From the NCBI GenBank assembly GCA_965285935.1, contig OZ260661.1:144026001-144090000 (forward strand): a DNA stretch of 64,000 bases, in the 5' to 3' direction. Below the pieces are notes generated by a model. The model did no database searches. It was not told the origin of the DNA and worked only from the letters and a program-made list of their open reading frames with translations. A program made the translations under genes and the position numbers. Positions 4,268 through 54,445 of the stretch are shown one piece after another. This DNA is from Ophelia neglecta (taxonomy: Eukaryota). How positions within the stretch are numbered: position 1 is the stretch's first letter; each line of letters begins with the position of its first letter.

Positions 4268-4359
4268 TTAAGCAAATGACAAACATTGTGTGAGTACCTA
4301 TGAGATATTAGTCGAGTTTGAGTTTGAAGCACTGAATACAATAATGAAACCAAGTCCAA

Positions 4360-8205: not shown

Positions 8206-10085
8206 CCGACGAACTCCCTGAAACTCAAGCGAAAGGCACGGAAAGGTGCCTACTTGCTGGAAATTACCGAAATCTAACATGGCGAAGGAGAATTTGTTCA
8301 GGCTATTTGTTATATTCATCATTAAAATAATCGGTGTCCATTGTTTGGAAGACGCTGCACAGAGTTACATAACTCGTCTGGCATTTATTTCTATGAAATC
8401 CCATGGAAATATACAGGACACGCTTGCTGCTACAGCATCAAAGCTTATTCAGTCCACTGCTCACTGCCACCCACGTCCTATGAAGGGTCCTTCCAGAATA
8501 TACCCCTACTCTCCCTGTGGCATTGTTCATTCCGGAAGCGAGGACTTTGGTATGTCCGCATACTGGAAATTAAGCGTTCACAAAACGTTAAACATTAATC
8601 TTACAATTGTTCACTTGTTACTAGAGGATTCCATGTATAAATGCCAGTTTGAGAGGCTAATTTTGACGGTTACGCTGCCTTCTGGTGTTGATATACAACG
8701 CGCATATTGCGGACATATCGTCCCTCGGAGCATCTACATAGAATCAACCGAACTAAGTTTACAATACCTTAATGACAACTCACCTACAGGAGAAAATGAC
8801 GGATTGGCGAAAGGCATTATTATTCTGTATCAAATTGTTAGTGCATATTGTTAGAACAATTACCAAAGACTTGGAAACAGTATAATTTATCATAATATGC
8901 CCCGCTTCCACACTCATAAAGAAAGTTTCAGGATAACCATACTAGCGGATTATAGTGAGCAGATCCGTAGCAGTCTCGTTGGGAACGTAACCTGTTATGA
9001 TGTTCATGGTTTTGACGGACCCTTGAGTGTTTTGGCCAAACTTACCATGCGGGTGAAGTCATCTGATAAAATCTACTTTGAAAAATCAACCGCATTCATA
9101 ATATCAATGCAAATTAAAATCTCAGATTCACCACATTGCCTGGGCTCAAGGAATACTCTTGATTTGAAAATAGCATTTCAGGTCACGGTAATAGTCTTTT
9201 CCCCATCAACTTGTTTCGAGGGTTTTGGAAGCCAAACTTCTTATAGAAGCGATCACAGGTGCCCTGGGACATGCTGTATTAGCTCTCATATAGTAAGCAC
9301 AGAACCGGGTAGTTTTATAGACTTGCAGATAACCAAATACAATATAGCCGGACCTAATACAGATGACTGTCGTTATCGTGGAGTAGCCATATTTGAAGCT
9401 TCCAGGACACTCATGCTGCATCATTCTATAGCGCAACGCGGGACAAATAGATTCTTCAATGCTTATGCTCCAGTCAGTGTGTTTTGTAAATCTGTTTGGA
9501 CATGGGAGACCAGCACAAAACAGCCTCTGATCACACGATACCGCAGCAGTACTCATGCCGTGGCTGTTTTTATTTATTTATTTCCAATGCCTGGTAGTTT
9601 TCTGAACATTACACTAAATCCAACTCGCAGCGAATGTCAAGGTAGATTTGCCTATTGCAAGCCTATAAAAAATTATGAAGCTATACCAATATCAAGTGTG
9701 GCATACTTAAGATATAAAATACCGCTTGAGTACATTCAATATAATCCCTTTTGCCGCAAAAATGAACTTACTACAGACTTGTGGAGAATACAGCATTCTC
9801 ATGGCTACCTCTGTATATTTATGTTCCAATTAATTCCTTCAAATCTAGGCAGGAATCATAGAGCTGTTCGTTGTCAGGTATTACAGTACATTCCAACTTT
9901 CACTGAATGGCAGGCTACAAAAAGGTGTAGACTAGGTTTCAGTCCGGTGGACTTCGTATTAGAGGTCCTCGATATCACTACGGAACAACTGACAGAGAGA
10001 GTAGCGGCATGCAAGGCAATGTTGATGCCTTTCCATCAAACGATAAGTCGAAACACCCTTTACTCTGTTCATCCCGGTTGCCAAG

Positions 10086-11377
10086 GGCTTTGTGTTAAAA
10101 GCGAACGCGAAAATACGCGCGAAAGGCAAAAGCGAAACACTTTATACTACTCCAGTACTACTTTCTATGAGCTAAGATTATCGTGTTGTTACGCCTGGAC
10201 ACAAGGCCAAAGCAAATTTGTTAAGTACTCACTGATTGGCAGGGTCATCTCCATAGGGGTATGTACACAGTAAGCAGTGGCTCCACACAGCTAGGGGGGG
10301 GGGGGGGGGGGCTTTGATTTGGCTAGGTGTGAAGGATTTTTTTAAGGCTCTAAAGAGTTTAACTATAAATTAATTTCAGTACACATTTGTGGAAGGGAGG
10401 ACAATGGTGGAATAAACTTGTGGTGACAACCTACCTAAGGTGGTGAGGATACTTTTATCCAACTATATTTTAATGTATAGGCCTATTTTCAGAGGCCAAC
10501 TGTTGGAATTTTGGAAAAGTCTCATTTTTCAATTAAGTGGAACACATCGCCCTAATATAAATGTAGCAATGCAATTGTTGGTAGAAAAAAATGGGTTTAA
10601 AAATTATAGGAACAATCTCTCCCCAATCCTAGACAAGTAAAGATAACATTTATTATATTTATATCACTATTAAGATACATAGCCATAGTGCACATGCATG
10701 TACACGTACTAAAACAAATGGATTGAAAAAATTTAATAAACAAACACCACCACAATCCCAAAGAAGTATATATCTTAAATCTCTTTTATTGCTTTGATAT
10801 AAAATAACACAGTTTCTTCTAATTTGTACCATGTTTCTATAGGGTTAGAATAATATTTATTATATCTGTGTTGCCGCCTTCACTTGTAAACACATTAGTT
10901 GCTAGTAGATTATTTAACATCTGGCAAATATGTCCACCCTCATTGAATAGATATTTTTTTAAATATTTAAAAGGGTCATTTAAAAGCGGAACATTTTTCT
11001 ACTAGTGGTTTTGTGGTACAATTAGGAGGGGGACTTTTTTTTATATAGTTAGCTTTAATTGCTTTCCGTGATTGGCATGAAGAAGTCTAAGACACGAAGA
11101 AAGGCAATGCCCTGCCAGTACATAGGCCTATTATCCGCCATGTAATTTATATCCTACTCCGGCGTTCAGTCGGCGCCGCCCTATACATGGCGCATATAGC
11201 TCCGCGGTGGAGGTGCTTACGTATATGGAAATACACACACACACACAGACTAACAAAACAACCACACGAAGAGGAGCAAAATCGACCAGCCCGGCCCACT
11301 TCGATGGTAACCGCCGGCGTCCTAAGGGAATTCGGTCTCTCCTTAGAGGTGTAGAAGTCCAGCTTCTGCCGGCGTTC

Positions 11378-11410
<33 letters not shown>

Positions 11411-11777
11411 CGAGGCGCAGATACCGCCCGCACTGTTACCTCCGCTGTTTAGTGCCCACCGGTCCCTTGCAAAGTGCTTCTCGTGAATGACCAAACAAGA
11501 TTTTCCTCGAGTGTGTGCTTTGCCGGCTTTTTCATATTGCAATAACTGATTTTCTACATGGAAAAACGTTACATATTTAGATAGTACATTTGCCTTCGAT
11601 CACCAGTTTTCATCAAGTAGAACAATGTTGCTGAATTTTCTAAACCCGCCCTAACAAGCCTCTTCCAGGCACAACTACACGATAATGACAGGCCCGAGAA
11701 AGTAGTATTGAAGTAGTATAATATGTTTCGCTTTTGCCTTTCGCGCGTGGTTTCGCTTTTGCTTTTAACACAAAGCC
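10086..11777. mobile_element. Non-autonomous TIR DNA transposon with 9-bp TSD (MULE- or Merlin-like) inserted in exon 1
   Basis: TSD GTTGCCAAG at 10077-10085 and 11778-11786; imperfect TIRs of about 115 bp starting GGCTTTGTGTTAAAAGC; empty site in the paralog near 40150; internal (AC)n and (AATC)n. Confidence 0.92.
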
Positions 11778-12613
11778 GTTGCCAAGCATTTGCTCTATTT
11801 GCTAAAAGAAAATGGACCGGGGATATAACTGTCCAGTTAGCACATATAGATGAAGTATTGCCACTCATTGGCCCTGGAACACCCGTTGAAAAGTTTATTC
11901 AGGTATCGTCAGAATTCCACTATGAGAGACTTGAATATCATATTGATCTGAGTAACTTCACTTTTGCCAAACTGGTGGCCCACTACCAGTTCAGGTATAA
12001 ACTAGAAAAATATTATGAAGGTAACATCTAGGATTATGCAATCATGTACAGAAATGTGACAGTTATAGAGTTTAAACATTCAGGGGATTGTAGCAAAGTG
12101 TGTGTAGTATTTGCTGCGGCTCACAGACAACCGCACAAACTAAACGTGCTGGCAGAGACAGGCTGGTATTGGAGTAAGACTTACAACACAATAGTGTTAA
12201 ACAAGAGAAGCGCGTACAATTTTATGCATATATTCTATAATCTATACAATGTTAGGGTATTGTGGGCGGGCCCATTCATCTCCAGAGATAAATCTGCCCA
12301 GTGCGCGTTTAACCCAGCTTGCAGTGTGACGATGTCTGTTGATCCTTTTGTTCCTCTACGAGACCTAATCTCTCATCATCACATCATTGTGGACAAACAG
12401 TGCTGTGAAGAGAGTACAGCTTTTCATCTTAGTCTCTGGACGCCAATGGAACTTTCCTGGGTGGAAGCAGAAGAACGCTGTGTATCTGTTGGTGGTCATT
12501 TGCCGATTGCATCGACACCAAAGGAAATTACCATATTGGAAAATATCATTTTGGGGGCCAGATTTGATACCAACCGATTGCCATTCCCTAATCCATCACG
12601 ATTAAATCCACGA

Positions 12614-13010
12614 ATAGGCACATTTATTGGTCTTAATGCATCGGCGGTAAGTGCTTTATGGTAAACTCCGTGGATATAGTGACTTAATCATTTCTGTAAT
12701 TATCGCTGTGTGCAACACCTTCTAAACTCTAAGCTCCCACATATTGAATGATTAAATTGTAGTTTTAAAATTAGTCTAGGAGTTATCTGTCGTTCTTGCA
12801 AAGCCCAAGTTATAGGCACATTTATTGGTCTTAATGCATCGGCGGTAAGTGCTTTATGGTAAACTCCGTGAATATAGTGACTTAATCATTTCTGTAATTA
12901 TCGCTGTGTGCAACACCTTCTAAACTCTTAATCTCCCACATATTGAATGATTAAATTGTAGTTTTAAAATTAGTCTAGGAGTTATCTGTCGTTCTTGCAA
13001 GGCCCAAGTT
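12614..13010 (+). repeat. About 198-bp tandem duplication spanning the exon 1 end and the splice donor
   Basis: ATAGGCACATTTATTGG...GCCCAAGTT at 12614-12811 and again at 12812-13010; single copy in the paralog. Confidence 0.95.
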
Positions 13011-16000
13011 ATGTATCATCAGACCGTTTTTTTTTTAAGTCAAGGGAGGTAGAGGCTCGAATATAGGTTTTCAACCAGGCAGGATATTATGATTTCGTAG
13101 TCCTTGTAGCCTTCAAGACAGTGTTTTCATATTTATTAGTAATACATTTTGAATTAACTAAAGTAGGAAATTGGTTTGCATTTCAGATGCGTTGGGTAAC
13201 TGGACAAAATGCCATTATTGGCAACCTTGTTTCTTTCTCCGGAGAGGACCAGTCAACTCTTTTAAACAAGCAAGAGCATCACGACGAAGATGATATGTGT
13301 GTTTTTGCCGAAAGTGAGTATCGTGAGACTATTTATAACAGGAACAATTTTCGGTGGCACAGGGTTCCATGCAAGCAACCTAAATTGACTCGACAGTTAA
13401 TTTGTCAGAAATGGCCTGATAGTGAACATAGATATAGTCTGGACAGCCACCTACTAATTTATATCGACGCCATGTTTATGGCATTGCCATTACTGGACCC
13501 TAGTTGTGATGACGGGGTAGAGATTGCAGGATGGACTAATAGAGGATCCTACGACTGTAGTACTAAGACTTTGAATTCAACTACATATTTAAATGAGATA
13601 ACTTTAGTTCGGCTAGCTAAAGCCGTTGATAGTCTGCTACGCCCTGTTTGTTATGTTATCACAGGCGTAGTCCCGGTTTGTTTAAATTATATAACAAATA
13701 TACAAAAAGATAAGAGGGAAAGTGATTTGCTTTCTGTCAAGGTTGTGAACCAAAGCTTGGTACTAGGTCCATTTGTTTGTAGACCAGAGAGAATGGCACA
13801 TAACAACAAGTGTCTAAAGCCTACCGTCGAAAATGTCCTCCATTCAGGCTTAAAACCTGATAAACAATTTGCTAATGAAAAATATATTTTAGACATTTAT
13901 GATTCCATAAAGTAACTACAGTATTTGGGATTTTGCGACTGGACGGTATTTTTCAGCGGAAAATCATTGAAAAGCACTGTAACAAATCCTCAGAGATGCG
14001 CAAACGTTCTTAATATAACACTAATAATTGAACAGGCAACTGCATCAGAACACGTCGGGTGTGCGAAATATCAAACTTCTTGCAAGGAGGGAACATGCAT
14101 ATCTGATTGGGCAATAATGGACGGAGAAAAAGATTGTAATGATGGGTCAGACGAGAACTCGGGCATGTTTCTTATTAATGTTTCTTGTGATATTGATGTT
14201 TTACAGTCACGATGTCTCTGTGCTGCACAATATTTCAAGTGTTTGTCTGGGGGATGTGTCCCCTGGTACAGGGTCTGTGACACTAGGAGTGACTGTCCTG
14301 ATCAGGAGGACGAAAGGATCTGTGTGAAACCCTTGCTCTCAGAAGCTCTACCGCGGGTTTACATTGATATGTTAAAACAGGCGGTAGAGTATCCTATAGC
14401 TGCCTCTTCCTTTGAGGGTGAACCGGTTTGTAATGAGGGCAAACCGGTTTGTAATGAGGGGAAATCGGTTTGTAGTGGTTTATTTTTATGCCGGACAAGT
14501 GACACATGTATACCGATGGAATGGGTGGATGATCAGTTTCCTGACTGTCAACGGAGGGACATATTCACTGCTGAAGATGAGAGATTCATTTGGCACGTTG
14601 ATAACCCTATGGCTTTACTCAATTGTAGTGATCCTACCCACATTCCTTGTTCAAACCCTCCGTCGAAGTGTTTTCCATTAAATAAGCTATGCATTTATGA
14701 ATTGACTGCATACGGTAAAGTCAAGTTCTGTAGAAATGGTGATCACTTAAAAGTTTGCAGCAAGTTCCAATGCCCAGGGCGGTTTAAGTGTCCTGACTCA
14801 TACTGCCTGCCCTTGCACCTAGTTTGTGATGGTGAAAATCAGTGCTTTGGTGGGGAAGATGAACTCGGTTGTCCTCCTAGTGGACAATATCTGAACTGCC
14901 CTGGCTTCTTTCGGTGTAAAGGGGGCTTTTGTCTGCCACAGAGTAGTGTATGTGATGATAACGTCAATTGCCCATTGTATGGCGACGATGAGTTTTTCTG
15001 TAGTTTGACCCTGTGTCATGAAGGGTGTGTTTGTAGATGGATGACTGTAACATGCATTAACTCGACCATTCACGAGATCATAGCTATAAAGATTAAATCA
15101 ATTAGTATTCATGGAAACGGAGTTGTATTTCCCAAGATTTTAGCTGGTGGTTATGTTGTTTCTGTCAATCTATCCCGGAACTCCTTTGTTGTTATTTTGG
15201 AAGATGCATTTTCTTTCCTTTCCAATGTGGCTATCATTGATATTTCGAACAATAGAATTGAGTTGCTCAAGACCAGGTCATTTGACAGCCTTTTAAATCT
15301 GAGGAACATTTACTTGGAAGGAAATCCGGTCAAAGAAATAGAGCCCTTTGCCTTTTTCAATTTGGGCAGGTTAACTAGTCTCATATTCCGCGGTATGAAC
15401 TTGCAACATATTAAGCCTGATTCATTTTACAATATTTCATCGGTCAGGGTGATTGATTTCTCTTCTAATAAAATTATATCATATGACTTCTCTATATTCA
15501 AGAACTTTCCCAACTTAGAGAGAGTCATTCTGACTGATAACCCTTTGGCAATAGTGTATCATCTAGAAGTCTTAAATGTCACAATTGACACGGATGTTGG
15601 TTATTTTTGTTGCCTTTTTGAAAGCAGCCGTTGTGCTGAGTTGCCGCTCATAAGTTGTCTTTGTCCAGGCAGTCTTTCTCATATTAAACTTTTATGTGCA
15701 AATATATATGCATTTTGTCTGATTGTCTTAAATGGCGTTGTTTTCAAACTGAGAAGTGATAAGGTTTCACCAGTAAGTAAGCAATGGATTTTTATAAACT
15801 TAACCGGTATTGCTTACGGTGTATATATTCAAATCATGACTCTGCGAGAATTATTATTCGATTTTAAAGCAATTCATTATCAATACGGTTCCCGGAATAT
15901 GTGGTGCATTGTCGCGGCTTACATCCAATATTTTCACGTGCGGCTCTTGTGCGCTAAAGGTTATTTCTTTATTTTCTCTTTATCAGAGAACCAAACACCT

Positions 16001-18232
16001 CAAAACAGCCATTCATATGTTGGATACTTACACGAAGAAAGGTGTTGGTATCTTATGGATTGTAACTTTGTTCATGGTTGTCGGGGTTTATATCTGGGGT
16101 GTTTATTCAGGGTCGGATCCAAATCTGTCGGAGCTATGCTCCTTCTTCTTCCCTGCTACCGACCCAGGGCTACCAGGTATAGCGCTGCAAACCTATTTTC
16201 TGACACTATTCATTGTATCGGTGTCTGTTTCCTTTTGTTTGCTTTGGCAAATATATAAACGTATGAATGAGTCTTCGTTGCTGTTGAAGGCGACAGGTGG
16301 GAAGGTATCAAAACAGACATCCAATCCTTTGCGTGGGATTCTATTAAAGACTACGGTTGACTTCATTTTATTAATGCCAGTGACAATTATATGTATGCTA
16401 TATCTAGTTAACATTAATATTCCTATTAATTACGGTCACGTGCTCAGTACTTATACAGTTCCGGCGTATTGGCTGGTGAATCTGGTTTTGTATTTGATCA
16501 GATATTTCAAATCATAAATCATATAATTTGGCTTCGAAAGTGAAAGCATAAATTGTATGACGATTTCATAATACTTAATATTATAATAATTTGTATATAC
16601 CAAAAAATGATCAAAAATGCCCTACAAACCACGGAAACAGTAGTAAAAATGGTTGTTTACCAACCACAAAACGGCGTCTATACAGATACCTTGATATCAG
16701 CATGATTATGTGATTTGTTAATGTACAAAACCCCTTGTTAGCCAAATGGCAAAATTCTTGCAAATTATATAAGCCGTAACAGCTTGTCCTAAAGCTCACC
16801 TCCGGCATGTCAAATCATATAGCCAGTGTTTGCTTTCCCTAGAACCCTTCCCTAGTGCATGGCAAATCATACAGGCATTATTAGCTTGTCCTAGAACCCA
16901 CTTCCCGCTATGAGGCGGTATTAGCGTGTCTTAGAACTCACCTCTCGCGGTATGGCCAATCACATAAAAAGGTCTCGAGGAAGAATTCTGTCCTGGTTCA
17001 CAAAAAAATTTAATCTGGTCCCAGTTTGGATGCTATTCATTCCAGGCAGTTTCTTTGGTTGATTTCGTGTCTTTATAATAATAGGATTTATATGATTTAG
17101 AATTTGAGCTCTTTGCTAAGGCCGTGTTATCGATTAAGGGGATCAGTCAGCAATATACAGAGAATAATTTAACTATTGATATATGCTTGAAAAGTTCGAA
17201 GAATTTACTTTTAACATGTGTTGATGAATATTTTGGACTAGATTACTTCATTGCAAAAGGCAAATTTACTTATATATGACCTGGCGAGTAAATCTTCAGA
17301 TCGTGAACGAAGATAACCCACATTCAAAATGGTGTATGGGGTATGGAAGAATCCCAAATCGTCTTGGATCGTGATTTCCAACCTGCAAAGAAAGCCACAC
17401 CGAAAATGAGTGATTTTCTTGTTCTTAAGAAACAAGAAGTCGACCTGAGCAATAGAGGTAGGAGTAAAAGCTACAGGAGAATCTAGGTGAAACGAAGACA
17501 TCATTACTGGAGGACCTTCAGACTACATTTTCTCAAAAGCTGGAGCTTGAACATACTACTATAGCGAGAGTTCATTGAACTCAAACTAAGCCACCACTTG
17601 TTTATGCCAGGGTGAAGAAATAGTTCGACAGAGAAACTTTCTTTTAAAGTCTTAAAAGACAGAGGCCTGTACACTACTGGTGATATTAAGCGAACTACAA
17701 GGAATGAAGAAGTATTGCTAAATAAAATAAAACATTTAGACAGCAGGGTAAGCTGGCCTTTGTGCCGTTCTCAGTAACTTGTATTCTATTGTACAAGGAT
17801 AGCCGACTCCTGGTTCACTAAAGACTTTAAAATATTCAGAAAATGAGAGAAAGTATTGTATACTAGGCAACGCCTGCATTTTGTAGATAAAGCCCCCCGC
17901 AATATAGGGTTTGTAACTGTAGTCACCCAGGTATTGAAATCAGCGTTCACAGGTATGATCCCTAGGTAATCAACAATTAGTAAGTGACACCAGAGCTGTG
18001 AAAGCGTGTAATTGAACTTGAACTAACTGTCAATTTGACACTTGAATTAGTTGACGTGTCACTTGATGTATAAGAACGGCCATAGTCTAAGATTTAGCCT
18101 TCCCACTATGTTATTATAGAGCTGATCGCTTGTCTGTCACTTATATCTCTATTCATATCATTTTTTGCGTCTTGCGTGTGTGTTTGTGTATAACTTGTTT
18201 TTGACGTGTGAATTAATATTACTTTATCAAAT

Positions 18233-18369
18233 NNNNNNNNNNNNNNNNNNNNNNNNNNNNNNNNNNNNNNNNNNNNNNNNNNNNNNNNNNNNNNNNNNNN
18301 NNNNNNNNNNNNNNNNNNNNNNNNNNNNNNNNNNNNNNNNNNNNNNNNNNNNNNNNNNNNNNNNNNNNN
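18233..18369. other. Assembly gap (137 N)
   Basis: Run of N. Confidence 1.
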
Positions 18370-27660: not shown

Positions 27661-27722
27661 CGCAAAAAGTTAAGTAGAAAACTTTTTATCATATTAAATT
27701 AACAAGCGCTATATAATTTAAC

Positions 27723-28467: not shown

Positions 28468-28645
28468 GGCCTATAAGCCGGTAAGTAAAAAACAGCTCGG
28501 ACACTTGTCAGGTTTATCCAAACGAGCACTAGACCAAAAGCCAAAGGGAGATATGTTATAACACCATTAACTATAAGAACAGCCAAAAGGCCGCCAAACC
28601 TTACCAAGGCTCAAAATAATTAAAAAACGTGGTCTTCTGAAATAT

Positions 28646-28854
28646 ACGGACACGACTCAGGATCGTGGTCCTTTATAACAGACGGACACGACTCAGGATC
28701 GTGGTCCTGTATATCAGACGGACACGACTCAGGATCGTGGTCCTTTTTTATTAGACGGACACGACTCAGGATCGTGATCCTTTATAACAGACGGACACGA
28801 CTCAGGATCGTGGTCCTTTTTTAGTAGACGGACACGACTCAGGATCGTGGTCCT
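28646..28854 (+). repeat. Six-copy 36-37-bp hairpin repeat array inside the YR element
   Basis: ACGGACACGACTCAGGATCGTGGTCCT at 28646, 28682, 28718, 28755, 28791 and 28828, with 9-10-bp AT-rich linkers. Confidence 0.95.
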
Positions 28855-28974
28855 TTGTAACATCTAAATACAATTCAAGCTAATAGTTATCTTAAAACGC
28901 CCACCTGCCTTCACTTCACTATACCGATCGCTTATATTATATACTATGATATTAAATTATTTTTTTCTCCACAG

Positions 28975-29993
28975 AAATACTAAGGCGGCCTAAGGACGAA
29001 TTCAAAAATTTAAAGGATACTAAACTAAAAGACATCGCATCCACTTTGCCCGACGTACTTCTAGCCGGCAAGGCGCCAAACACCATAAAATCCTACGGAG
29101 GAGGGTTTCACCGGTTCAAAAACTGGACAAAGAATTTCACGGAGCTCAGTTACCTCCCTGCAAACAGCACCTCTATAACTCTTTACCTGCTCGCCCTGGT
29201 ACAAGAAGGAAAATCCCCAGGAGTGCTACAAAACGCCTTTGCATCAATAGCTTGGGCACACAAGTTAGCATGTCTACCAGACCCTACTCAAAATACAACC
29301 ACTAAGCTCGTACTAGAAGCCGGCAGGCGTATCAACGGGAAGCCGGTCGAAAAGAAAGACATCGTCACCCCAGAAATTTTGCAAAAAATCGTAGCACTAA
29401 GCGGAAAAAATATGAATAATACGCTCGCCCTAAGAACAGCCGCTATGTGTCTCGTAGCCTTCGCAGGTTTCCTCCGTTTCAACGAGCTAGCCAATCTTAG
29501 AAGATGCGACATCGCCTTTTTCGACACGTACATGTCACTATTCATCGAACACTCCAAAACTGACATTTATAGGGATGGAAAAACCCTAGTCATATCCAGG
29601 ACCAACACAGATTTATGTCCAGTCAATTTACTGTATCTTTATTTCACCAGAGTAGGCCTTAACATATCAGTTGAATCCGATGAGTTCATTTTCAGAGCAA
29701 TGAGTTTTTGCAAACGGAGCGGTCAGTACAGGCTCAGAAGCGGGTCCCGGCCACTCTCATACTCGACCGTCAGGGACCTTTTTAAACAATCTCTTTCTTT
29801 AGCAGGTTTCGAAGCAAAGAATTTCGGCCTACATTCCCTAAGAGCAGGCGGCGCTTCGGCCGCCGCTAACAACGGCATCACCGAGCGCATGTTCAAACGG
29901 CACGGCAGATGGCGGTCGGAATCCGCCAAGGACGGCTACGTGAAGGACAAACTAGAATCCAGATTAAACGTAACTCTATCGCTGGGCCTTTAG
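28975..29993 (+). CDS. Tyrosine recombinase exon, intact
   Basis: Catalytic residues in FLRFNE, SKTD, HSLRAGGA, HGRW and DGY. The frame is open back to the acceptor TTTTTTTCTCCACAG at 28974; no ATG at the start. Confidence 0.92.
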
Positions 29994-32098: not shown

Positions 32099-35000
32099 TT
32101 AACAGTCGTAGCCCTTACATACCCACATGGTCAGGGGGTTTGAGGCTATAGTGATATTTCTAATTTTTTTCTCATTTTCATAACAGATAGACAGGTTTCC
32201 TGAATTCCCATACTTAAATTTAGTAATGCAAAGCTTCCCAATGAAAAGGAGTGCATTAACAAGTTTATATGAATTACGTGTACATTTTTCTTCGGGTATT
32301 CCGAACAGAATTTCGACCTCACTTAATTTAATGCGTTGTACATTTGTTAACATAATGTCGGTTTCTACAGTTTTCCATAATACAGTTACAGACTTGCAAA
32401 AGTAAAAAAAGTGATCAATAGTCTCCGTTTGGTTACAATATTTACATGTATCATGATCCTGTATTTTTATCTGTTTTAGATATGTACCTACAGGATAAAT
32501 TTCTAAAATGATTTTCCACTGCAACGTAACTATTTTAGGTTCTCCATTAGATGACAGTATGGCTCTTTCTAAAGTTTCTGGACAATTACTAACAGCGCCA
32601 TATTTTTCATAGTAACGTTTTGACAATATAACCCCTTCACATGGATAAATCAGATGCAGAATAGCCGTCTTCATCATCGATGAAGTATATTGTTCTATGT
32701 TAACACCACATAGCTGTATATCTTTAATGTTTATTGCATCTTCCACCTTACATAAATTTGTCTCAGTTAGAGCATTGCGGACTATATTCAGTTCCCACTG
32801 AGTACTACTATTGTCACCAAATACACTATATATTTTTTCATAATTGAGCACATTATTCTGTATTATATCATGGACGTATAAAAATCCATTTTGGATCCAC
32901 CGCCTTACAAAAATAGGGGAACCTCGGTACGTGATACATTTGTTGTTAAAAAGATAACATGTAGTTTTGTCTGTATCAACATGGTTTGTATCAATCCAGT
33001 CGAACAGAAGAATTTTCCAAAATGAGGGAATATAATCCACAGAATTCATCCCCCTGAATCCGGATGAAACAGTATTACAGTTAAACACGCTCAAGTTGTT
33101 ACCAAAATGTGCATAAAAAGAATTGGGTATAATTTTCCATAGTTCATCACCTTCACGTAAAAGCTTAGTAATCCATTTAAACTGAAATTGGGTTTGAATA
33201 ATTTTCAGATCAGGCATGCCAGGTCCACCTTTGTTAACCGCCTGGATTACTATTCTTCGTTTAACCCTCTCTGTAACCTTCTTGCCACTAAGACTGTTCT
33301 CGGACCTAAGAAATTTAAAGAAAAATGAATTGATTTTGTTTAGAACTTCGTTTGGATATCTAATGCACTGCATAATATATGTAAATTGGGAAGCTAGTAG
33401 GGATTTAATTATGACAACTTTCCCATACATTGTCAAATGTCGTTTGGACCAGTTTTTAATTATATTTTCACACACTCCCAATCGTTTAGTCCAGTTATCG
33501 TCACATCTACCTGCCACAGTAGAGCTACTTAACGTTACACCAAGGATTTTGACAAGATTATTAGGATATATTTTCCATTTTATGTTTTCGATTTCTTTTC
33601 GACGGTACTTCCAACAGCCGAGCCACATGGCTTCTGTTTTGGATTTATTCAGCTGCAAACCGGATATAATATGAAAACTGTGTATATATTTTAGAAAAAA
33701 TTGTAGAGATTCTTCGTCCGCCAGAAGGCCTGTGCTGTCATCAGCAAATTGGAGCAGTTTCGCTTCTCTTTCAAACATTGGCAGTTTAATGCCTTTATTT
33801 TATCACATTTCCGTATTTTAATTGAACAAATTTCTAAGGCCAAAATAAATAATACTGGTGACAAGGGACATCCCTGCCTGATACCTCTTTCGAGGGGTAT
33901 AATCTTTGTGAACCATCCGTTATTTATGACTTTAGCTACATTGTAACTGGTTAATGTCTTCACCCATCCTATGAACATTTGCGCAAAATTGAACTTATGA
34001 AGACACGTCAGCATAAAAGATTTTGAAATAGTGTCGAATGCTTTCTTATAGTCGATAGCTACTAATATACCAGGGAGCTGCTTGATGTCTAGATATTCTA
34101 TAATGTCATCGAGACCTCTAATAACATTTCCCGATGATCTTCCTTTGATATAGCCCGCTTGATCTGTTGATATCAATTTATTAATGACTTGGGAAAGGCG
34201 CGTTGCTAGTATTTTGGCAGAGATTTTATAGTCAATGGTTGAAAGTGCTAGAGGCCTCCAATTACTCAATTGTTCTCGTGGCTGATTTTTTCCTTTATAG
34301 AGCAATCTGACTATGCTTAACCTTTGACTAGGTGATAAAAAGCCCTTTTGGTAACCAATATTGAGTGAATCTCTCACAATCGGCCCTAATACTCCCCAAA
34401 TCACCTTATACCATGCCGCAGTTAAGCCATCTGCCCCTGGGCTTGAATCGTTCTTCATAGCGCGAAGCGCTTCTGAACATTCCCTAAGTGTAAAAAGACC
34501 CTCACATGATTCTTTTTCTATATCATTTAGTATAGGTATTGGAAGGTTTTCAATAAACTTATTTAAAGTTTCGTTCGGGAAATTATTCGGTTCTGTATAC
34601 AGGTCTTTATAAAACAATTCAATATGATTCAAAATTTCAGTGCGGTTTGTAACTTTATGGTCATCACTTTTAGCCAGAATTTCTATGTTGTTACTATTTC
34701 CCCGAGCTTTCTCTAGGCCTAGAAAATATTTAGTATTCTTCTCCCCTTCCATAACCCATTTTTCTTTTGACCGTAACTGGGCACCCTTTGCTCTCATAAT
34801 TTCTGTTATCTCTATTTGAGACTTAATGTCATTTAAATGTTGTATTATTACTTCATCATTTGGTTTTTCTAAGAGTTTTTTATTATATACAACCATATCT
34901 ACCTGCAACTTCTTTTCGACTTGTTTTTGTGTAGCCGCTCTTGATAGGCCGTATTTTTGAGACTCATCATTTACTTTACGTTTTATTATTTCCAGAAGAA

Positions 35001-35850
35001 GGTCTGGCGGGGTTCCGTCATTTTCTGAAATGACGTTTGCTAACAGCTCGTTTATTATATCTATAAATTGATTTTCCCTAAGGAAGGAGTTATTTAATTT
35101 CCAATAGGATGGTCCTCTTTTTTGTTTGTTACATGCATATCTCATGAAAACGCCCCTATGATCAGTCATGGGTAAATCCATGATTCCTATGTCATTAATT
35201 TCACCCAATGTTATTTCATTAGCAAATTTATAGTCTATTCTGCGAATTATGTAACATGATTTGTGCCGCCAAGTGTACTCTTTAGTATCAGGATGAAAGC
35301 TTCTAAAAACATCCTCTAGCCGTTCGACCATACCTCTAAATGCTGTAACCTCACTTGTAGGGTGGTTGTTTCCCCCGATTATATCCAGTTTTGGCTGCAA
35401 CGTGCAATTAAAGTCCCCAACTACAATTATTCTACAATCAGGGTAAGTGTCTAAGACTCTCGCAAAATGATCTTTTACCACATTGAAAAAAATTAGTTTC
35501 TGGGCAGTTGGACACGGTGCATAAACATTAATAAGTACATGACATACATTTTCATAATCAAACTTAATAGCCAGTAGCCTGCTTTCTGATATAATTTCAA
35601 CACAATTCTGGCAAGACTCGTAGAATTGGGCACTAAGTAATATCATCTCACCTTTACTATGAGTTGAACCAGCCACATAAAACACTTTACCTTTCTATCT
35701 AGATTCAATGTCGGGTATGTCCTGTTCAATTATGTGAGTTTCCTGAAGGAATACCACATCAAAATGTTGTTGCACAAGCGCTCTCAATATAACAGCACGC
35801 TTAATTTTCCTTTTCAGTCCGTTCACATTGATTGTAATAATATTAACCAT
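32099..35850 (-). pseudogene. LINE ORF2 (APE endonuclease, RT, C-terminal Cys/His domain) with two lesions
   Basis: MVNIITINVNGL...FLQETH from the ATG at 35850; TAG at 35697-35695; VYAP, GDFN, RIDY, TDH; NWRPLAL, IDYKKAFD, RQGCPLSP; frameshift near 33780; QFADDST; CKYCNQTETIDHFFYFC. Confidence 0.92.
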
Positions 35851-38233: not shown

Positions 38234-38306
38234 CCGAGGAACTCCCTGAAACTCAAGCGAAAGGCACGGAAAGGTGCCTACTTGCTGGAAATTGCCGAAA
38301 TCTAAC

Positions 38307-41018
38307 ATGGCGAAGGAGAATTTGTTCAGGCTATTTGTTATATTCAACATTAACATAATCGGTGTCCATTGTTTGGAAGACGCCGCACAGAGTTACATAT
38401 CGAGTCTGGCATTTATTTCTTTGAAATCGCATGGAAATATCAAGGACACCGTTGCTGCTACAGCATCAAAGTTTATTCAGTCCACGGCTCACTGCCACCC
38501 ACGTCCAGCTATGAAGGGTCCGTCCAGAGTTTACCCCTACTCTCCCTGTGGCATAATCCATTCCGGAAGCGAGGACTTAGGTAAGTCCGCATACTGGAAA
38601 TTAAGCGTTCACAAAACGTTGAACATTAACATTACAATCGTTCACTTGTTACTAGAGGATTCCATGTATAAATGCCAGTTTGACAGGCTAATTCTGACTT
38701 TTACGCAGCCCTCTGGTGTTGATATACAAATCGCATATTGTGGACATTTCGTCCCTCGGAGCATCTACATAGAATCAACTGAACTTAGTTTACAATATCT
38801 TAATGACAACTCACCTACAGGAGAAAATAACAGATTGGCGAAAGGCTTTACTATTCTGTATCAAATTGTTGGTGCAGATTATCCCGTGAGCAAAGACATA
38901 TTTCATAATACACCTCACTTTAATAACAATTACAAAAGACTTGGAAATAGTATAGAAGAGATGGTTTATCATGTTATGTCCCGCTTCCGCACATATGAAG
39001 AAAAATTTAGGATTACCATACTAGCGGATTACAGTGAGCAGATCCATAGCAGTCTCGCTGGGAACGTAACCTGTTATGATGTTCATGGTTTTGACGGACC
39101 CTTGAGTGTTATGGCAGAGCTTACGATGCGGATGAAGACATCTGATAAAATCTACTTTGTAAAATCAACCGCGTTCATAGTATCAATGCAAATAAAAATC
39201 TCAGATTCAGCGCATTGCCTGGGCTCAAGGAATACTCTTGATTTGAAAATAGGATTTCGATTCACGGTTATGCCCTTTCCACCATCAACTTGTTTCGAGG
39301 CTTTTGGAAGCCAAGTTTCTTATAGAAGCAACCACATGTGCCCTGGGAAATGCTGCACCAGCGCTCATATAGTAAGAACAGAACCGGGGAGTTTTATAGA
39401 CTTGGAGATAACTAAATACAATATAGCCGGACCTAATACAGATGACTGTCGTTATCGTGGAGTAGCCATTTTTGAAATTTCCAGGGTATTCATGCTGCAT
39501 CATTCTATAGCGCAACACGGGACCAATAAATTCTTCAACGCTTATGCTCCAGTCAGTGTGTTTTGTAAATCTGTTTGGACATGGGAGACCAGCACAAAAA
39601 AGCCTATGATCACACGATACCACAGCAGTACACATGCCTTGGCTGTTTTTGTTTATTTCTTTCCAATGCCTGGTAGTTTACTGAACATTACACTAAATCC
39701 AACACGCACCGAATGTCAAGGTAGATTTGCCTATTGCAAGCCTATACAAAATTATGAAGCTATACCAATATCAAGTGTGGCATACTTAAGATATAAAATA
39801 CCGCTTGAGTACATTCAATATAATCCCTTTTGCCGCAAAAATGAACTTACTACAGACTTGTGGAGAATACAACATTCTCATGGTTACCTCTGTATATTTA
39901 TGTTCCATTTAATTCCTTCAAATCTAGGCAGGAATCATAGAGCTGTTCTTTGTCAGGTATTACAGTACATTCCAACTTTCACTGAATGGCAGGCTACAAC
40001 AAGGTGTAGACTAGGTTTCAGTCCGGTGGACTTAGAGGTCCTCGATATCACTACGGAACAACTGACAGAGAGAGTACCGGCATGCAAGGCAATGTTGATG
40101 CCTATTCATCAAACGATAAGTCGAAACACCTTTTACTCTGTTCATCCCAGCTGCCAAGCATTTGCTCTACTTGCTAAAAGAAAGCGGACCGGGGATATAC
40201 CTGTCAAGATAGCGAATATAGATGAAGTATTGCCGCTCATTGGCCCTGGAACACCTGTTGAAAGGGTTATTCAGGTAACTTCAGCATTCCATTATGAGAG
40301 CCTTGAATATCATATTGATCTGAGTAACTTCACTTTTGCCAAACTGATGGCCCACTACCAGTTCAGGAATAAACTAGAAAAAAAGCATGGAGGGAACATC
40401 ACGGCGTTTACAATCATGTACAGAAATGTGACAGTTATAGAGTTTAAACATTCAGGGGATTGTAGCAAAGTGTGTGTACTGTTTGCTGCGGCCCACAGAC
40501 AACCGCACAAACTAAACGTGCTGGCAGGGACAGGCTGGTATTGGAGTAAGACTTACAACACAATAGTGTTAAACAAGAGAAGCGCGTACAATTTTATACA
40601 TATATTCTATAATCTGTACAATGTTAGGGTATTGTGGGCGGGCCCATTCATCTCCAGAGATAAATCCGCCCAGTGCGCGTTTAACCCAGCTTGCAATGTG
40701 ACTATGACTGTTGATCCTTTTGTTCCTTTACGAGACCTAATCTCTCATCATCACATCATTGTGGACAAATATTGCTGTGAAGAGAGTACAGCTTTTCATT
40801 TAAGTCTCTGGACGCCAATGGAACTTTCCTGGGTGGAAGCAGAAGAACGCTGTGTATCTGTTGGTGGTCATTTGCCGATTGCATCGACACCAAAGGAAAT
40901 GACCATATTGGAAAATATCATTTTGGGGGCCAGATTTGATACCAACCGATTGCCATTCCCTAATCCATCACGATTAAATCCACGAATAGGCACATTTATT
41001 GGTCTTAACGCATCGGCG
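38307..41018 (+). CDS. Exon 1 of the intact GRL101-like GPCR: signal peptide, two CUB-like modules, N-terminal half of a C-type lectin domain (904 aa)
   Basis: ATG in AACATGG context; hydrophobic leader; CUB-like PCGII...WKLSV...INITI...C...YCG...GFTILYQ and FIDLEI...DDCRYRGVAIFE; CTL-like LSWVEAEERCVSVGGHL...FIGLN; phase-0 donor GCG|GTAAGT. Confidence 0.88.
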
Positions 41019-41351
41019 GTAAGTGCTTTATGGTAAACTCCGTGGATATAGTGACTTAATCATTTCTGTAATTATCGCTGTGCGCAACACCTTCTAAACT
41101 CTTAAGCTCCCATATATTGAATGATTAAATTGTAGTTTTAAAATTAGCCTAGGAGTTATCTGTCGTTCTTGCAAGGCCCAAGTTATGTATCATCAGACCG
41201 TTTTTCTTGAAGTCAAGGGAGGTAGAGGCTCTAATATAGGTTCTCAACCAGGCAGGATATTATGATTTCGTAGTCCTTCAAGACAGTGTTTTCATATTTA
41301 TTAGTAATACATTTTGAATAAACTAAAGTAGGAAATTGGTTTGCATTTCAG

Positions 41352-44300
41352 ATGCGTTGGGTAACTGGACAAAATGCCATTATTGGCAACGTCGTTTCTT
41401 TCTCCGGAGAGGACCAGTCAACTCTTTTAAACAAGCAAGAGCATCACGACGAGGATGATATGTGTGTTTTTGCTGAAAGTGAGTATCGTGTGACTATTTA
41501 TAACAGGAACAATTTTCGGTGGCACAGGGTTCCATGCAAGCAACCTAAATTGACTCGACAGTTAATTTGTCAGAAATGGCCTGATAGTGAACATAGATAT
41601 AGTCTGGACAGCCACCTACTGATTTATATCGACGCCATGTTTATGGCATTGCCATTACTGGACCCTAGTTGTGATGACGGGGTAGAGATTGCAGGATGGA
41701 CTAATAGAGGATACTTCGACTGTGGTACTAAGACTTTGAATGTACCTACATATTTAAATGAGATAACTTTGGTTCGTTTAGCTAAAGCCGTTGATAGTCT
41801 GCTACGCCCTGTTTGTTATGTTATCACAGGCGTAGTCCCGGTTTGTTTAAATTATATAACAAACATACAAAAAGATGGTGAAAGTGATTTGCTTTCTGTC
41901 ATTTTTGTGAACCAAAGCTTGGTACAAGGTCCTTTTGTTTGTAGACCAGAGAGATTAGCACATAACAACAAGTGTCTAAAGCCTACCTTCGAAAACGTCC
42001 TCCATTCACGCTTAAAACCTGATAAACAATTTCATCATGAAAAATATATTTTAGACATTTATGAGTCCATAAAGAAACTACAGTATTTGGGATTTTGCGA
42101 CTGGACGGTATTTTTCAGCGGAAAATCATTGGCAAGCACTGTAACAAATCCTCAGAGATGCTCAAACGTTCTTAATATAACACTGATCGTTGAACAGGCA
42201 ACTGCACCAGAACACGTCGGGTGTGCGGAATATCAAACTACTTGCAAGGAGGGAACATGCATATCTGATTGGGCATTAATTGACGGAGAAAAAGATTGTA
42301 ATGATGGGTCAGACGAGTACTTGAGCATGTTCCTTATTAATGTTTCTTGTGATATTGATATTTTACAGTCACAATGTCTCTGTGCCGCACAATATTTCAA
42401 GTGTTTGTCTGGAGGATGTGTCCCCTGGTACAGGGTCTGTGACACTAGGAGTGACTGTCTTAATCAGGAGGACGAAAGGATCTGTGTGGAACCCTTGCTC
42501 TCAAAACCTCTACCGCGGCTTTACATTGATATGTTAAAACAGGCGGTAGAGTTTCCCATAGCTGCCTCTTCCTTTCAGGGTGAACCGTTTTGTAATAAGG
42601 GGAAAACGGTCTGTAATGAGGGAAAATCGGTTTGTAGTGATTTATTTTTATGCCGGGCAAGCAACACATGTATACCGATGGAATGGGTGGATGATCAGTT
42701 TCCTGACTGTCAGCGGGGGGAAATATTCATTGTTGAAGATGAGCGATTCATTTGGCACGTTGATAATCCTATGGCTTTACTTAATTGTAGTGATCCTACC
42801 CACATTCCTTGTTCAAACCCTCCGTCGAAGTGTTTTCCATTAAATAAGCTATGCATTTATGAATTGACTCCATACGGTAAAGTCAAGTTCTGTAGAAATG
42901 GTGATCACTTGAAAGTTTGCAGCAAGTTCCAGTGCCCAGGGCGCTTTAAATGTCCTGACTCATACTGCCTGCCCTTGCACCTAGTTTGTGATGGTGAAAA
43001 CCAGTGCTATGGAGGGGAAGATGAAAAAGGTTGTCCTCCTGGCGGACAATATCTAAACTGCCCTGGCTTCTTTCGGTGTAAAGGAGGCTCTTGTCTGCCA
43101 CAGAGTAGTGTATGTGATGGTAACGTCAATTGCCCCTTGTATGGCGATGATGAGTTTTTCTGTAGTTTGACCCTGTGTCATGAAGGGTGTGTTTGTAGAT
43201 GGATGACTGTAACATGCCTTAACTCGACCATTCACGAGATCATAGCTAAAAACATAAAATCAGTTAGTATTCATGGAAACGGAGTTGTATTTCCCAAGAT
43301 TTTAGCTGGTGGTTATGTTGTTTCTGTCAATCTATCCCGCAACTCCTTTGTTGTTATTTTGGAATATGCATTTTCGTTCCTTACCAATGTGGCTATCATT
43401 GACATTTCGAACAATAGAATTGAGCTGATCAAGACCGGATCATTTGACAGCCTTATAAATCTGAGGAAGATTTACTTAGAAGGAAATCAGGTCAAAGAAA
43501 TAGAGCCCTTTGCCTTTTTCAATTTGGGCAGGTTAACAAGTCTCATATTCCGCGGTATGAACTTGCAACATATAAAGCCTGATTCATTTTACAATATTTC
43601 ATCGGTCAGGGTGATTGATTTCTCTTCTAATAAAATTATATCATATGACTTCTCTATATTCAAGAACTTTCCCAACTTAGAGAGAGTCATTCTGACTGAT
43701 AACCCCTTGGCAATAGTGTATCATCTAGAAGTCTTAAATGTCACAATTGACACGGATGTTGGTTATTTTTGTTGCCTTTTTGAAAGCAGCCGTTGTGCTA
43801 AGTTGCCACTCATAAGTTGTCTTTGTTCAAGCAGTCTTTCTAATATTAATCTTTTATGTGCAAATATATATGCATTTTGTCTGATTGTCTTAAATGGTGT
43901 TGTTTTCAAACTGAGAATTGATAAGGTTTCACCAGTAGGTAAGCAATGTGTTTTTATAAACATAACCGGTATTGCTTACGGTATATACATTCAAATCACG
44001 ACTCTCCGAGAATTATTATTCGATTTTGAGGCAATTCATTATCAATACGGTTCCCGGCATATGTGGTGCATTGTCGCGGCTTACATCCAATATTTAGTCA
44101 CTTGCGGCTCTTGTGCGCTAAAGGCTATTCCTTTATTTTCTCTTTATCAGAGAACCAAACACCTCAAATCAGCCATTCATATGTTGGATACTTACACGAA
44201 GAAGGGTGTTGGTATCTTATGGATTGTTACTTTGTTCATGGTTGTCGGGGTTTATATCTGGGGTGTATATTCTGGGTCGGATCCAAATCCGTCGGAGCTA

Positions 44301-44681
44301 TGCTCCTTCTTTTTCCCTGCTACCGTCCCAAGGCACCCAGGTATAGCGTTGCTATCCTATTTTCTGACATTATTCATAATATCGGTATCTGTTTCCTTTT
44401 GTTTGCTTTGGCAAATATATAAACGTATGAATGAGTCTTCATTGCTGTTAAAGGCGACAGGTGGGAAAGTATCAAAGCAGACATCCAATCCTTTTCGTGG
44501 AATCCTAATAAAGACAACGGTTGACTTCATCTTATTAATGCCATTGGCAATCGTATGTATTCTATCTCTAGTTAACATTTATATTCCTATTAATTACGGT
44601 CAGGTTCTCAGTACTTATACTGCTCCGACGTTTTGGCTGGTGAATTTGATTTTGTATTTGATCAAATATTTCAAAGCATAA
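41352..44681 (+). CDS. Exon 2 of the intact GRL101-like GPCR: C-terminal half of the CTL, about 6 LDLa, LRRNT plus LRRs, hinge and 7TM (1109 aa)
   Basis: Acceptor TTTGCATTTCAG|, phase 0; RW...CV...WHRVPC...LICQK; LDLa modules including DGEKDCNDGSDE and the GRL101-type LCIYE...CRNGDHLKVC...CPGRFKCPDSYCLP; CHEGCVC; LxxLxLxxN repeats; YFCC hinge; seven hydrophobic segments ending VNLILY. Confidence 0.92.
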   Translation: MRWVTGQNAIIGNVVSFSGEDQSTLLNKQEHHDEDDMCVFAESEYRVTIYNRNNFRWHRVPCKQPKLTRQLICQKWPDSEHRYSLDSHLLIYIDAMFMALPLLDPSCDDGVEIAGWTNRGYFDCGTKTLNVPTYLNEITLVRLAKAVDSLLRPVCYVITGVVPVCLNYITNIQKDGESDLLSVIFVNQSLVQGPFVCRPERLAHNNKCLKPTFENVLHSRLKPDKQFHHEKYILDIYESIKKLQYLGFCDWTVFFSGKSLASTVTNPQRCSNVLNITLIVEQATAPEHVGCAEYQTTCKEGTCISDWALIDGEKDCNDGSDEYLSMFLINVSCDIDILQSQCLCAAQYFKCLSGGCVPWYRVCDTRSDCLNQEDERICVEPLLSKPLPRLYIDMLKQAVEFPIAASSFQGEPFCNKGKTVCNEGKSVCSDLFLCRASNTCIPMEWVDDQFPDCQRGEIFIVEDERFIWHVDNPMALLNCSDPTHIPCSNPPSKCFPLNKLCIYELTPYGKVKFCRNGDHLKVCSKFQCPGRFKCPDSYCLPLHLVCDGENQCYGGEDEKGCPPGGQYLNCPGFFRCKGGSCLPQSSVCDGNVNCPLYGDDEFFCSLTLCHEGCVCRWMTVTCLNSTIHEIIAKNIKSVSIHGNGVVFPKILAGGYVVSVNLSRNSFVVILEYAFSFLTNVAIIDISNNRIELIKTGSFDSLINLRKIYLEGNQVKEIEPFAFFNLGRLTSLIFRGMNLQHIKPDSFYNISSVRVIDFSSNKIISYDFSIFKNFPNLERVILTDNPLAIVYHLEVLNVTIDTDVGYFCCLFESSRCAKLPLISCLCSSSLSNINLLCANIYAFCLIVLNGVVFKLRIDKVSPVGKQCVFINITGIAYGIYIQITTLRELLFDFEAIHYQYGSRHMWCIVAAYIQYLVTCGSCALKAIPLFSLYQRTKHLKSAIHMLDTYTKKGVGILWIVTLFMVVGVYIWGVYSGSDPNPSELCSFFFPATVPRHPGIALLSYFLTLFIISVSVSFCLLWQIYKRMNESSLLLKATGGKVSKQTSNPFRGILIKTTVDFILLMPLAIVCILSLVNIYIPINYGQVLSTYTAPTFWLVNLILYLIKYFKA

Positions 44682-53664: not shown

Positions 53665-54445
53665 TAGGTTGACGAGTCCCATATTCCGTGGTATGAACTT
53701 GCAGCACATAACGAGTCGCTGCTCATACTTTGCAGTCTTTCTATATTCAACTTATATGTGCAAATGTATATGCGTTTTGTCTGACTAGAACTAGAAAACA
53801 ACTAGAAATGCTAGCATGTTCTGTATTCCAAAATTCAACTTACCTTTTTATTTAATGCAGTAGGGGGTCCCTAGTTTTTATCACATACATGTTAATTTTT
53901 TTTTAAATAGGTTGACGAGTCCCATATTCCGTGGTATGAACTTGCAGCACATAACGAGTCGCTGCTCATACTTTGTCTTTGTGCAGGCAGACTTTCTATA
54001 TTCAACTTATATGTGCAAATACATATGCATTGTGTCTGATTGTCTTAAATGGCGTTGTCTCAAACTAAGGAGCGACACCGTTTCACCAGCAGGTAAGTAA
54101 TGGGTTTTATAAACATAACCGGTATAGCTTTGGCTGTATTTATTCAAATTATGACTTTGCGTGATTTATCATTCGATTTTGAAACAAATCATTTTCAAAA
54201 CGGTTCCTGGCATATGTGGTGCATTGTCGCGGGTTGCTTTCAATCTTTAGTCACGTGCACGCCTTCAGCGCTAACGGTTATTCTCATAAACTCCCTTTAT
54301 AAGAGAACCAAAATCCTCAAATCCGCCATCAAATTCACGATGCCACCGTCATGGCAAAGCATACAGGAAGAATTATCTTGTTCTAGAACACACCTGCCGC
54401 GGATTGGCAAATACCAAAGGTAGTATGAGCTTGTCCTATAACTCC
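53665..54445 (+). pseudogene. Deleted relic of a third GRL101-like paralog (LRR fragment, hinge, TM1-TM3, 3' flank repeat)
   Basis: LTSPIFRGMNLQHI, KLRSDTVSPAGK and FINITGIALAVFIQIMTLRDL...HMWCIVAG...SLYKRTKILKSAI match 43530-44180; followed by the GGCAAATCATACAGG-type repeat also found after both other copies; local duplication 53428-53790 vs 53801-54040. Confidence 0.88.

Follow-up and report, generated by a model that had tools for sequence, protein, structure and literature searches.

The 64,000-nucleotide stretch analysed here (the window; Ophelia neglecta contig OZ260661.1, positions 144,026,001 to 144,090,000) contains, at positions 38307-44681 of the plus strand, a predicted single and intact two-exon gene for a seven-helix surface receptor of 2,013 residues in type-I orientation. 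From its N-terminus the putative protein comprises CUB-type domains, a C-type-lectin-like domain (CTLD), an LDLa array, leucine-rich repeats (LRRs), a cysteine-rich hinge and a seven-transmembrane (7TM) domain, and its LDLa-LRR-7TM core is placed in type C of the LGR receptors (GRL101/relaxin-receptor-like). The gene belongs to a large, tandemly amplified family of the same genome. As a whole this explanation is given a probability of about 0.78; the gene and its receptor class make up the established part, and the proposed function is graded on its own below.

The gene is made of two long ORFs (open reading frames; 38274-41036 and 41352-44681 in the ORF list), the longest two in the window, the remaining long ORFs being those of retroelements and pieces of a broken paralogue. 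This length, the coding conservation seen in dozens of paralogues and a ratio of nonsynonymous to synonymous substitution rates (dN/dS) of 0.2-0.55 rule out a chance origin. The first methionine codon is found at 38307 and is followed in translation by a hydrophobic signal peptide. A GTAAGT donor begins at 41019, an in-frame TAA lies at 41034-41036, 15 nt inside the intron, and a pyrimidine-rich tract ending in tttcag extends up to 41351, so that the exons contribute 904 + 1,109 = 2,013 residues. The first-pass annotation, made from the sequence alone, had joined the two ORFs in frame across a 333-bp phase-0 GT-AG intron; its coordinates and arithmetic were correct, and the splice is strongly supported by paralogue comparison.

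For that comparison 20 paralogue loci of the same genome were used, 18 of them with an intact exon 1 and 14 with both exons inside a 9-kb stretch. A GT[AG]AG-type donor directly follows the codons homologous to GLNxSx in all 18 intact exon-1 copies, and in the 14 two-exon copies the codons homologous to xxWxxG come immediately after a CAG acceptor. Coding similarity ends at the GT and restarts after the AG at the same residues in these 14 paralogues, which range from 42 to 98% identity. Their introns measure 185-3,088 nt and 11 of the 14 are not multiples of three, which makes read-through impossible. An identical junction (...GFNNPK / gt...ag / LAWLDGKRP...) was found in a relative of ~20% identity on L034, a contig of another organism. 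The stretch is also present in three DNA runs, whose contigs read through the intron (e.g. 40981-41380) and are silent on splicing.

Domain searches were made exon by exon, and in exon 2 they revealed the receptor core. The LDLa array was detected above the cut-off of Pfam Ldl_recept_a (E 2.1e-23) in five stretches at exon-2 aa 291-604, immediately ahead of the LRR N-cap, and with megalin/LRP2 in the PDB (E 4e-72), and its cysteines fall by position into six groups of about six. The LRRs matched Pfam LRR_8 (E 1.6e-18, likewise above the cut-off) and the LGR5 and LGR4 ectodomains in the PDB (E 1e-41 to 1e-38), and their model, with a predicted local distance difference test score (pLDDT) of ~80, shows a strand once per 24 residues between 658 and 780. 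The top Foldseek matches of exon 2, over ~600 columns, were the cryo-EM structures of LGR4, TSHR, FSHR, LHCGR and a nematode LGR. A word search with exon 2 returned just three unnamed relatives and LDL-receptor proteins.

The 7TM domain is highly divergent, and its assignment comes from profile comparison. The 7TM profile of the clade was aligned by hhalign to the 7TM domains of four relatives with a probability of 96.2% (E 2.2e-9) over 272 columns, from the first to the seventh transmembrane helix (TM1 to TM7), which shows that the predicted domain is homologous to the rhodopsin-type 7TM domains of its relatives despite the divergence. At least three of the four relatives pass the Pfam 7tm_1 cut-off (P0001, P0002 and L041, with 54-67 bits); the fourth is L040. 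P0001 is 25% identical to the window receptor across LDLa, LRR and 7TM (E 5e-61), and in the PDB its 7TM is matched best by RXFP1 (E 4e-15), with a nematode LGR and TSHR next in order. For the P0002 7TM the nematode LGR came first and RXFP1 second, and a word search with the P0001 7TM found one named protein, a fly relaxin receptor 2. A direct PDB search with the clade profile does not retrieve RXFP1.

Four types of LGR are distinguished, A, B, C1 (relaxin-type) and C2 (GRL101-type) (PMC11863921). The window receptor has the LGR features of a rhodopsin-class seven-helix domain and an LRR ectodomain joined to it by a cysteine-rich hinge, the type C feature of LDLa modules N-terminal to the LRRs, and the C2 pattern of several LDLa modules (~six) with few LRRs (~six). 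These features support a type C placement of the predicted core, one that is not as fine as C1 against C2. The GRL101/RXFP affinity expected in the first-pass annotation is in agreement with the order of the core and with the matches of the relatives' 7TM domains.

Throughout the clade an ALKAI-type stretch is found in place of the E/DRY motif. The TM7 motif reads NLILY in the window copy, which shares the pattern N-L-I/V-L-Y with its two nearest relatives, and among the other ten paralogues compared its proline is kept in nine (NPxxY in six and HPxxY in three). The stop codon follows 6-14 residues past the TM7 motif in all 11 copies compared, and after 6 in the window copy. The set of motifs linked to class A signalling competence (E/DRY, NPxxY, helix 8 and C-tail) is thus not present in the window copy. 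Another subfamily of this receptor design in the same genome is represented by L041 (G000:C5:92409158-92414170; ORF 1399-4749, minus strand). Its 7TM is much more typical: it scores 53.9 bits with 7tm_1, retains DRR and DPxxY and ends in ~45 tail residues; as its ORF begins in the middle of the lectin domain, an upstream exon should be present.

The intron splits a CTLD, as the first-pass annotation had proposed, with the exon-1 half significant by profile and the exon-2 half recognized by motif only. Over the N-terminal half, the profile of the wider family detected the IgY receptor, DEC-205 and PLA2R through their CTLDs (E 1e-11 to 1e-5) and a type II antifreeze protein (3e-5), and multi-CTLD proteins were matched there once per repeat. 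Pfam Lectin_C is present in 7 of 33 family members, and two helices are predicted in this half (842-851 and 862-873). In exon 2 the junction is followed by W-x-(T/V)-x-G, then a cysteine, and then W..(V)PC......(L)IC, which in a side-by-side reading line up with the WxWxDG...C...WND..C...FIC of canonical CTLDs. The EPN and QPD motifs were not found in the long-loop stretch, and the WND position is occupied by WHR or WRR in paralogues (WHR in the window copy); classical calcium-dependent sugar binding is therefore not indicated, and the glycan sensing suggested in the first-pass annotation finds no indication in the sequence.

Upstream of the CTLD, exon 1 encodes a CUB front end. The first CUB domain scored 25.8 bits with Pfam CUB (cut-off 21.4), and the family profile over it matched cubilin (E 4e-16) and MASP-1/3 (~1e-11) in the PDB. 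VIA-align gave a Z of ~10 and a root-mean-square deviation of 2.7 A over ~100 residues, and hhalign gave 99.2% against a generic CUB profile, which was built from 120 CUB instances of the multi-CUB proteins of the deep search and run against segments of the family alignment. With the same generic profile a second CUB-like domain was well supported at aa ~353-473 (score 44), and a third, degenerate one is possible at ~228-314 (score 28.5). Reversed and 20 column-shuffled controls never scored above 17, the maxima for the two segments being 13.8 and 11.6, respectively. The generic profile was needed to see the repeat, since the family's own CUB profile gave just 28% against residues 330-480. In a poor model, the two-CUB structures of Neto2 and neuropilin (a1a2) align to residues 79-321, and cubilin and enteropeptidase to residues 79-468. 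The two CUB-like domains of the first-pass annotation thus correspond to a canonical CUB and a well-supported CUB-like domain with clean controls.

The rest of exon 1, from aa ~474 to 825, had no Pfam family, no PDB sequence match and no similarity to CUB with the generic profile over 470-830; its sequence is conserved among paralogues and also among ENA relatives without names. ESM Atlas searches with exon-1 residues 175-820 gave scores of at most 0.80 in which CUB-type families recur, a lead only, and a word search with exon 1 gave no matches. The stretch between the CTLD and the LDLa array (exon-2 aa 79-288) had no Pfam family, no ESM Atlas match and no likeness to CUB or to the exon-1 segments, including 470-830, and was modelled with a pLDDT of 20-35. 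The long cysteine-rich stretches that could not be assigned at first resolve in part into one or two additional CUB-like domains, and ~560 residues match nothing. The positions of all features are given in Table 1.

Table 1. Predicted features of the receptor gene and of its upstream paralogue (window positions; aa numbered within the exon)
Feature	Positions	Strand	Basis
Exon 1, 904 codons, start codon to splice donor	38307..41018	+	Met, signal peptide and donor position kept in 18 paralogues examined
Signal peptide, aa 1-22	38307..38372	+	Hydrophobic core ends in Cys22; Met and hydrophobic stretch in 18/18 paralogues examined
Canonical CUB, aa ~79-190	38541..38876	+	Pfam, PDB profile, VIA-align, hhalign
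Possible degenerate CUB-like domain, aa ~228-314	38988..39248	+	hhalign 58.7%, E 9.5e-5, 80 columns
Second well-supported CUB-like domain, aa ~353-473	39363..39725	+	hhalign 93.5%, E 2.2e-7, 93 columns
Predicted beta-rich stretch, cysteines conserved, aa ~474-825	39726..40781	+	Kept in paralogues and unnamed ENA relatives
CTLD, N-terminal half, last ~80 residues of exon 1	40782..41018	+	Family profile against PDB, Pfam Lectin_C in members
Intron, 333 nt, GT-AG, phase 0	41019..41351	+	Position conserved in 14 paralogues and L034
Exon 2, 1,109 codons and stop	41352..44681	+	Stop within 6-14 residues of TM7 in 11 paralogues compared
CTLD, second half, first ~78 residues of exon 2	41352..41585	+	Motif only
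Stretch with 8 conserved cysteines, exon-2 aa 79-288	41586..42215	+	Conserved in paralogues
Array of ~six LDLa-type modules, exon-2 aa 289-608	42216..43175	+	Pfam, PDB profile, cysteine spacing
LRR N-cap and ~six 24-residue LRRs, exon-2 aa 609-800	43176..43751	+	Pfam, PDB, model
Cysteine-rich hinge, exon-2 aa 801-830	43752..43841	+	Invariant Cys at 807, 808, 815, 823, 825
Divergent rhodopsin-type 7TM and 6-residue tail, exon-2 aa 831-1109	43842..44678	+	Seven predicted helices, profile comparison
Upstream tandem paralogue, disrupted (pseudogene)	8279..16514	+	tblastn, 83-91% identity to intact copy

A search of the same genome with exon 1, in which 50 of 166 first-look candidate loci were scored, gave at least 52 matches with 42-98% identity, most of them with uninterrupted frames of ~930 codons. 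A distant relative used as query gave 67 matches (153 first-look candidates) and added ~12 new loci on contigs C1, C2 and C12, and arrays of exon-2 type were found on C5 and C7. The predicted family can safely be put at no fewer than ~60 loci, an expansion in agreement with the lineage-specific family suggested in the first-pass annotation. More than 25 matches lie on both strands inside C1:143.17-144.13 Mb. Pseudogenes are common among the copies, and the one in the window carries a ~1.65 kb insertion in exon 1 (10123 to 11780) and a change of frame in exon 2 near aa 917-964. Two further fragments of the family in the window, an LDLa piece at 7002-7226 (plus strand, 45% identity) and a hinge/TM1-3 piece at 53965-54330 (plus strand, 50%), are probably relics of older copies.

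The family is under relaxed purifying selection (dN/dS 0.3-0.5). Nei-Gojobori estimates for recent pairs were 0.38-0.55 in exon 1 and 0.27-0.38 in exon 2, and ~0.2 for old pairs. Values of 0.2-0.55 were obtained for every domain block; the lowest were found in the LDLa and LRR blocks, and those of the 7TM domain were 0.26-0.42.

Relatives outside this genome were searched by comparing the exon-1 profile with 1.84 billion representatives, which gave 236 matches at E <= 0.001, among which 25 had E values below 1e-30. The best of these are 850-1,026 residues long and span the whole exon-1 profile, and all 20 that were looked up are unnamed ENA ORFs. The contigs of three relatives have the same layout, with an ORF of ~800-940 codons followed by one of ~880-1,140 codons with LDLa and LRR. 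Predicted two-exon relatives exist in at least one other organism. No protein of ~2,000 residues matching over the full length was found in this library, and hence no annotated model of the architecture. Automatic annotation cuts each gene into two unrelated-looking ORFs, which keeps the family out of sight in databases of named proteins.

The closest published counterpart is the SudRes2 cluster of Biomphalaria sudanica, described in 2025, with twelve "GRL101-like" genes that encode C-type lectin, LDL, LRR and 7TM domains (PMC12297450). Compared by description and not by sequence, these genes share with the window gene the order of lectin, LDLa, LRR and rhodopsin-type 7TM, and the cluster likewise has dense tandem arrays, truncated copies and haplotype differences. 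The snail proteins, listed as single ORFs of ~3.3-3.5 kb, have 1,090-1,168 aa, close to the length of exon 2 plus the first lectin half; their lectin domain is called unique to them by the authors. In the window gene the lectin-like domain is split by an intron, and its front end of ~825 residues with CUB, CUB-like and unassigned parts is missing from the snail proteins. The genes are associated with schistosome resistance (PMC12297450).

GRL101 of Lymnaea stagnalis, an orphan receptor with 6 LRRs and 12 LDLa modules, also has the several LDLa modules, ~six LRRs and 7TM of type C2 (PMC8286064). It differs from the window gene in having neither CUB nor lectin domains, whereas the window gene has ~six LDLa modules, ~1,190 additional N-terminal residues, no E/DRY and almost no C-tail. 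A single GRL101 is present in the ambulacrarians studied (PMC8286064), in contrast to the at least ~60 copies found here. RXFP1 and RXFP2 (type C1) share the order LDLa, LRR, hinge and 7TM with the window receptor, and differ in the number of LDLa modules (one) and LRRs (10), in their intact activation motifs and in their normal tail. Structurally, exon 1 is matched best by CUB surface receptors (neuropilins, Neto2, cubilin and ADGRG6/GPR126), whose long ectodomains likewise carry tandem CUB beta-sandwiches distally; their membrane parts are unrelated and the LDLa-LRR-rhodopsin core is missing, so the likeness is at the level of domains only. The architecture is thus new only in part. The predicted lectin-LDL-LRR-7TM core is already published in Biomphalaria, and what exceeds it is the CUB front end of ~825 residues, which is unrecorded and matched just unnamed ORFs, and the ~560 unassigned residues.

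Several results weigh against the explanation proposed here. The C-terminal 309 residues alone reach 22.1 bits with Pfam 7tm_1 (E 1.2e-4), below the cut-off of 30.5; the clade 7TM profile found only a muscarinic receptor in the PDB (E 0.003), and a pairwise BLAST comparison with the 7TM of a more typical paralogue gave no match. The exon-2 half of the CTLD, used as a profile, gave nothing significant against the PDB or multi-CTLD proteins. AlphaFold models built on shallow paralogue alignments were poor for both exon 1 (pLDDT 44, with the CUB part usable) and exon 2 (pLDDT 51, with the LRRs and helix bundle usable), and the ~560 residues mentioned above have no fold assignment. No RNA runs holding the stretch were found, so the splice rests on comparison. 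In addition, no domain has a dN/dS consistently above 1, unlike what a diversifying recognition surface might show.

As for function, the tentative reading, which is at best a leading candidate, is that of a recognition repertoire in which the ectodomain captures a ligand and the output is non-classical. The ligand of the long modular ectodomain would be an extracellular protein or glycoconjugate, whether of environmental, conspecific or non-self origin. Its capture would shift the membrane-proximal LDLa/LRR/hinge region relative to the helix bundle, as in RXFP1, for which the LDLa is described as the essential activating module in two sources (PMC6309025, bioRxiv 2021.06.06.446989). The output would probably not be classical G-protein/arrestin signalling, given a family without E/DRY, NLILY for NPxxY in the clade, and almost no C-tail. 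Many fast-diverging copies suggest a repertoire rather than a single hormone receptor, and the reading draws as well on tandem turnover, on the domain types, on the RXFP1 precedent and on the missing activation motifs. Microbe or chemical sensing, part of the first-pass proposal, can only be inferred from copy number and domain types.

A bolder version of this proposal is a hyper-expanded, lineage-specific recognition repertoire whose CUB and lectin-like sensing modules are coupled to a seven-helix module that has lost the classical G-protein switch, an invertebrate counterpart of immune or chemosensory arrays and kin of the snail lectin-GRL101 cluster, in which the unassigned stretches of 350 and 210 residues would be new ligand-binding folds; in this full form it is speculative and unlikely. 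GRL101-type receptors have reportedly been orphans since 1994, and a lectin-bearing cluster of this type was recently tied to parasite resistance in snails. The at least ~60 intact-looking copies, with their longer ectodomain and degenerate switch, could offer natural variation for questions on ligand and signalling.

The main rival to the recognition repertoire, unlikely and still to be taken seriously, is a signalling-poor receptor for binding, scaffolding or endocytosis, in which the helix bundle serves as an anchor or as a platform that recruits partners. Type B LGR4-6 act in this way with R-spondin and ZNRF3, and relatives of the LDL receptor function in uptake. The ALKAI-type stretch of the whole clade, the NLILY of the window copy and its nearest relatives and the tails of 6-14 residues are what such a receptor would be expected to have; LGR4 complexes are among the top structural matches, and the LDLa array resembles that of megalin. 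The 7TM domain is, however, still under purifying selection, NPxxY is kept in most paralogues, and other subfamilies in the genome have DRR, DPxxY and a longer tail.

Turning from the receptor type to the gene itself, the window copy could be a recent segmental duplicate that is unexpressed or turning into a pseudogene, though its frames are open. Three copies 98% identical to it lie ~90-140 kb apart, a disrupted copy is found 22 kb upstream, retroelements flank the gene, no RNA run holding it was found, and its divergence from L011 is too small to gauge constraint. On the other hand, its 2,013 codons contain no stops or frameshifts, its splice sites are intact, and constraint is evident in comparison with copies that are 86-87% identical (dN/dS 0.32-0.51), making decay of this copy improbable and an intact receptor gene the preferred reading.

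A classical endocrine receptor for one hormone, orthologue-like to GRL101 or to a receptor of relaxin/insulin-like peptides, is very unlikely. The LDLa+LRR+7TM core would suit this role, the 7TM of one relative has RXFP1 as its closest solved structure, and a role as receptor for an insulin-like growth factor has been suggested for GRL101 (PMC8286064). At least ~60 tandem copies that are 42-98% identical, many of them pseudogenes, contrast with the single GRL101 of the ambulacrarians studied, and neither the large additional ectodomain nor the degenerate set of activation motifs is expected of such a receptor.

Finally, two separate genes, one for a CUB protein that is secreted and one further downstream for an LDLa-LRR-7TM receptor, would agree with the separate listing of the ORFs by prokaryote-style gene callers in public assemblies and with the ATG that begins exon 2 in the window copy, and are nevertheless extremely improbable, because exon 2 lacks a signal peptide and its first codon is not ATG in three paralogues (Val in L017, Glu in L022 and L024), because the end of the first ORF and the start of the second both fall midway through one lectin-like domain, and because in every copy the break in coding conservation coincides precisely with the GT and the AG.

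A non-LTR (long terminal repeat) retrotransposon with two adjoining ORFs (32099-35685, minus strand; endonuclease-reverse transcriptase, RVT_1 and zf-RVT) lies directly upstream of the receptor gene. A second retroelement (26983-29993, plus strand) encodes a gag-like zinc knuckle, a reverse transcriptase and a tyrosine recombinase (Phage_integrase), and contains a 36/73-nt tandem array at 28646-28862. The GC peak and strong negative GC skew at 4-6 kb are due to a C-rich 33-nt tandem repeat (4701-5432, ~22 copies, 88% match), and a run of 137 N at 18233-18369 marks a gap or masked sequence. Elsewhere in the assembly, the 17.7-kb mitochondrial contig G000:C223 (L036, L037) has eight in-frame TGA codons in COX1, indicating that TGA is read as Trp.

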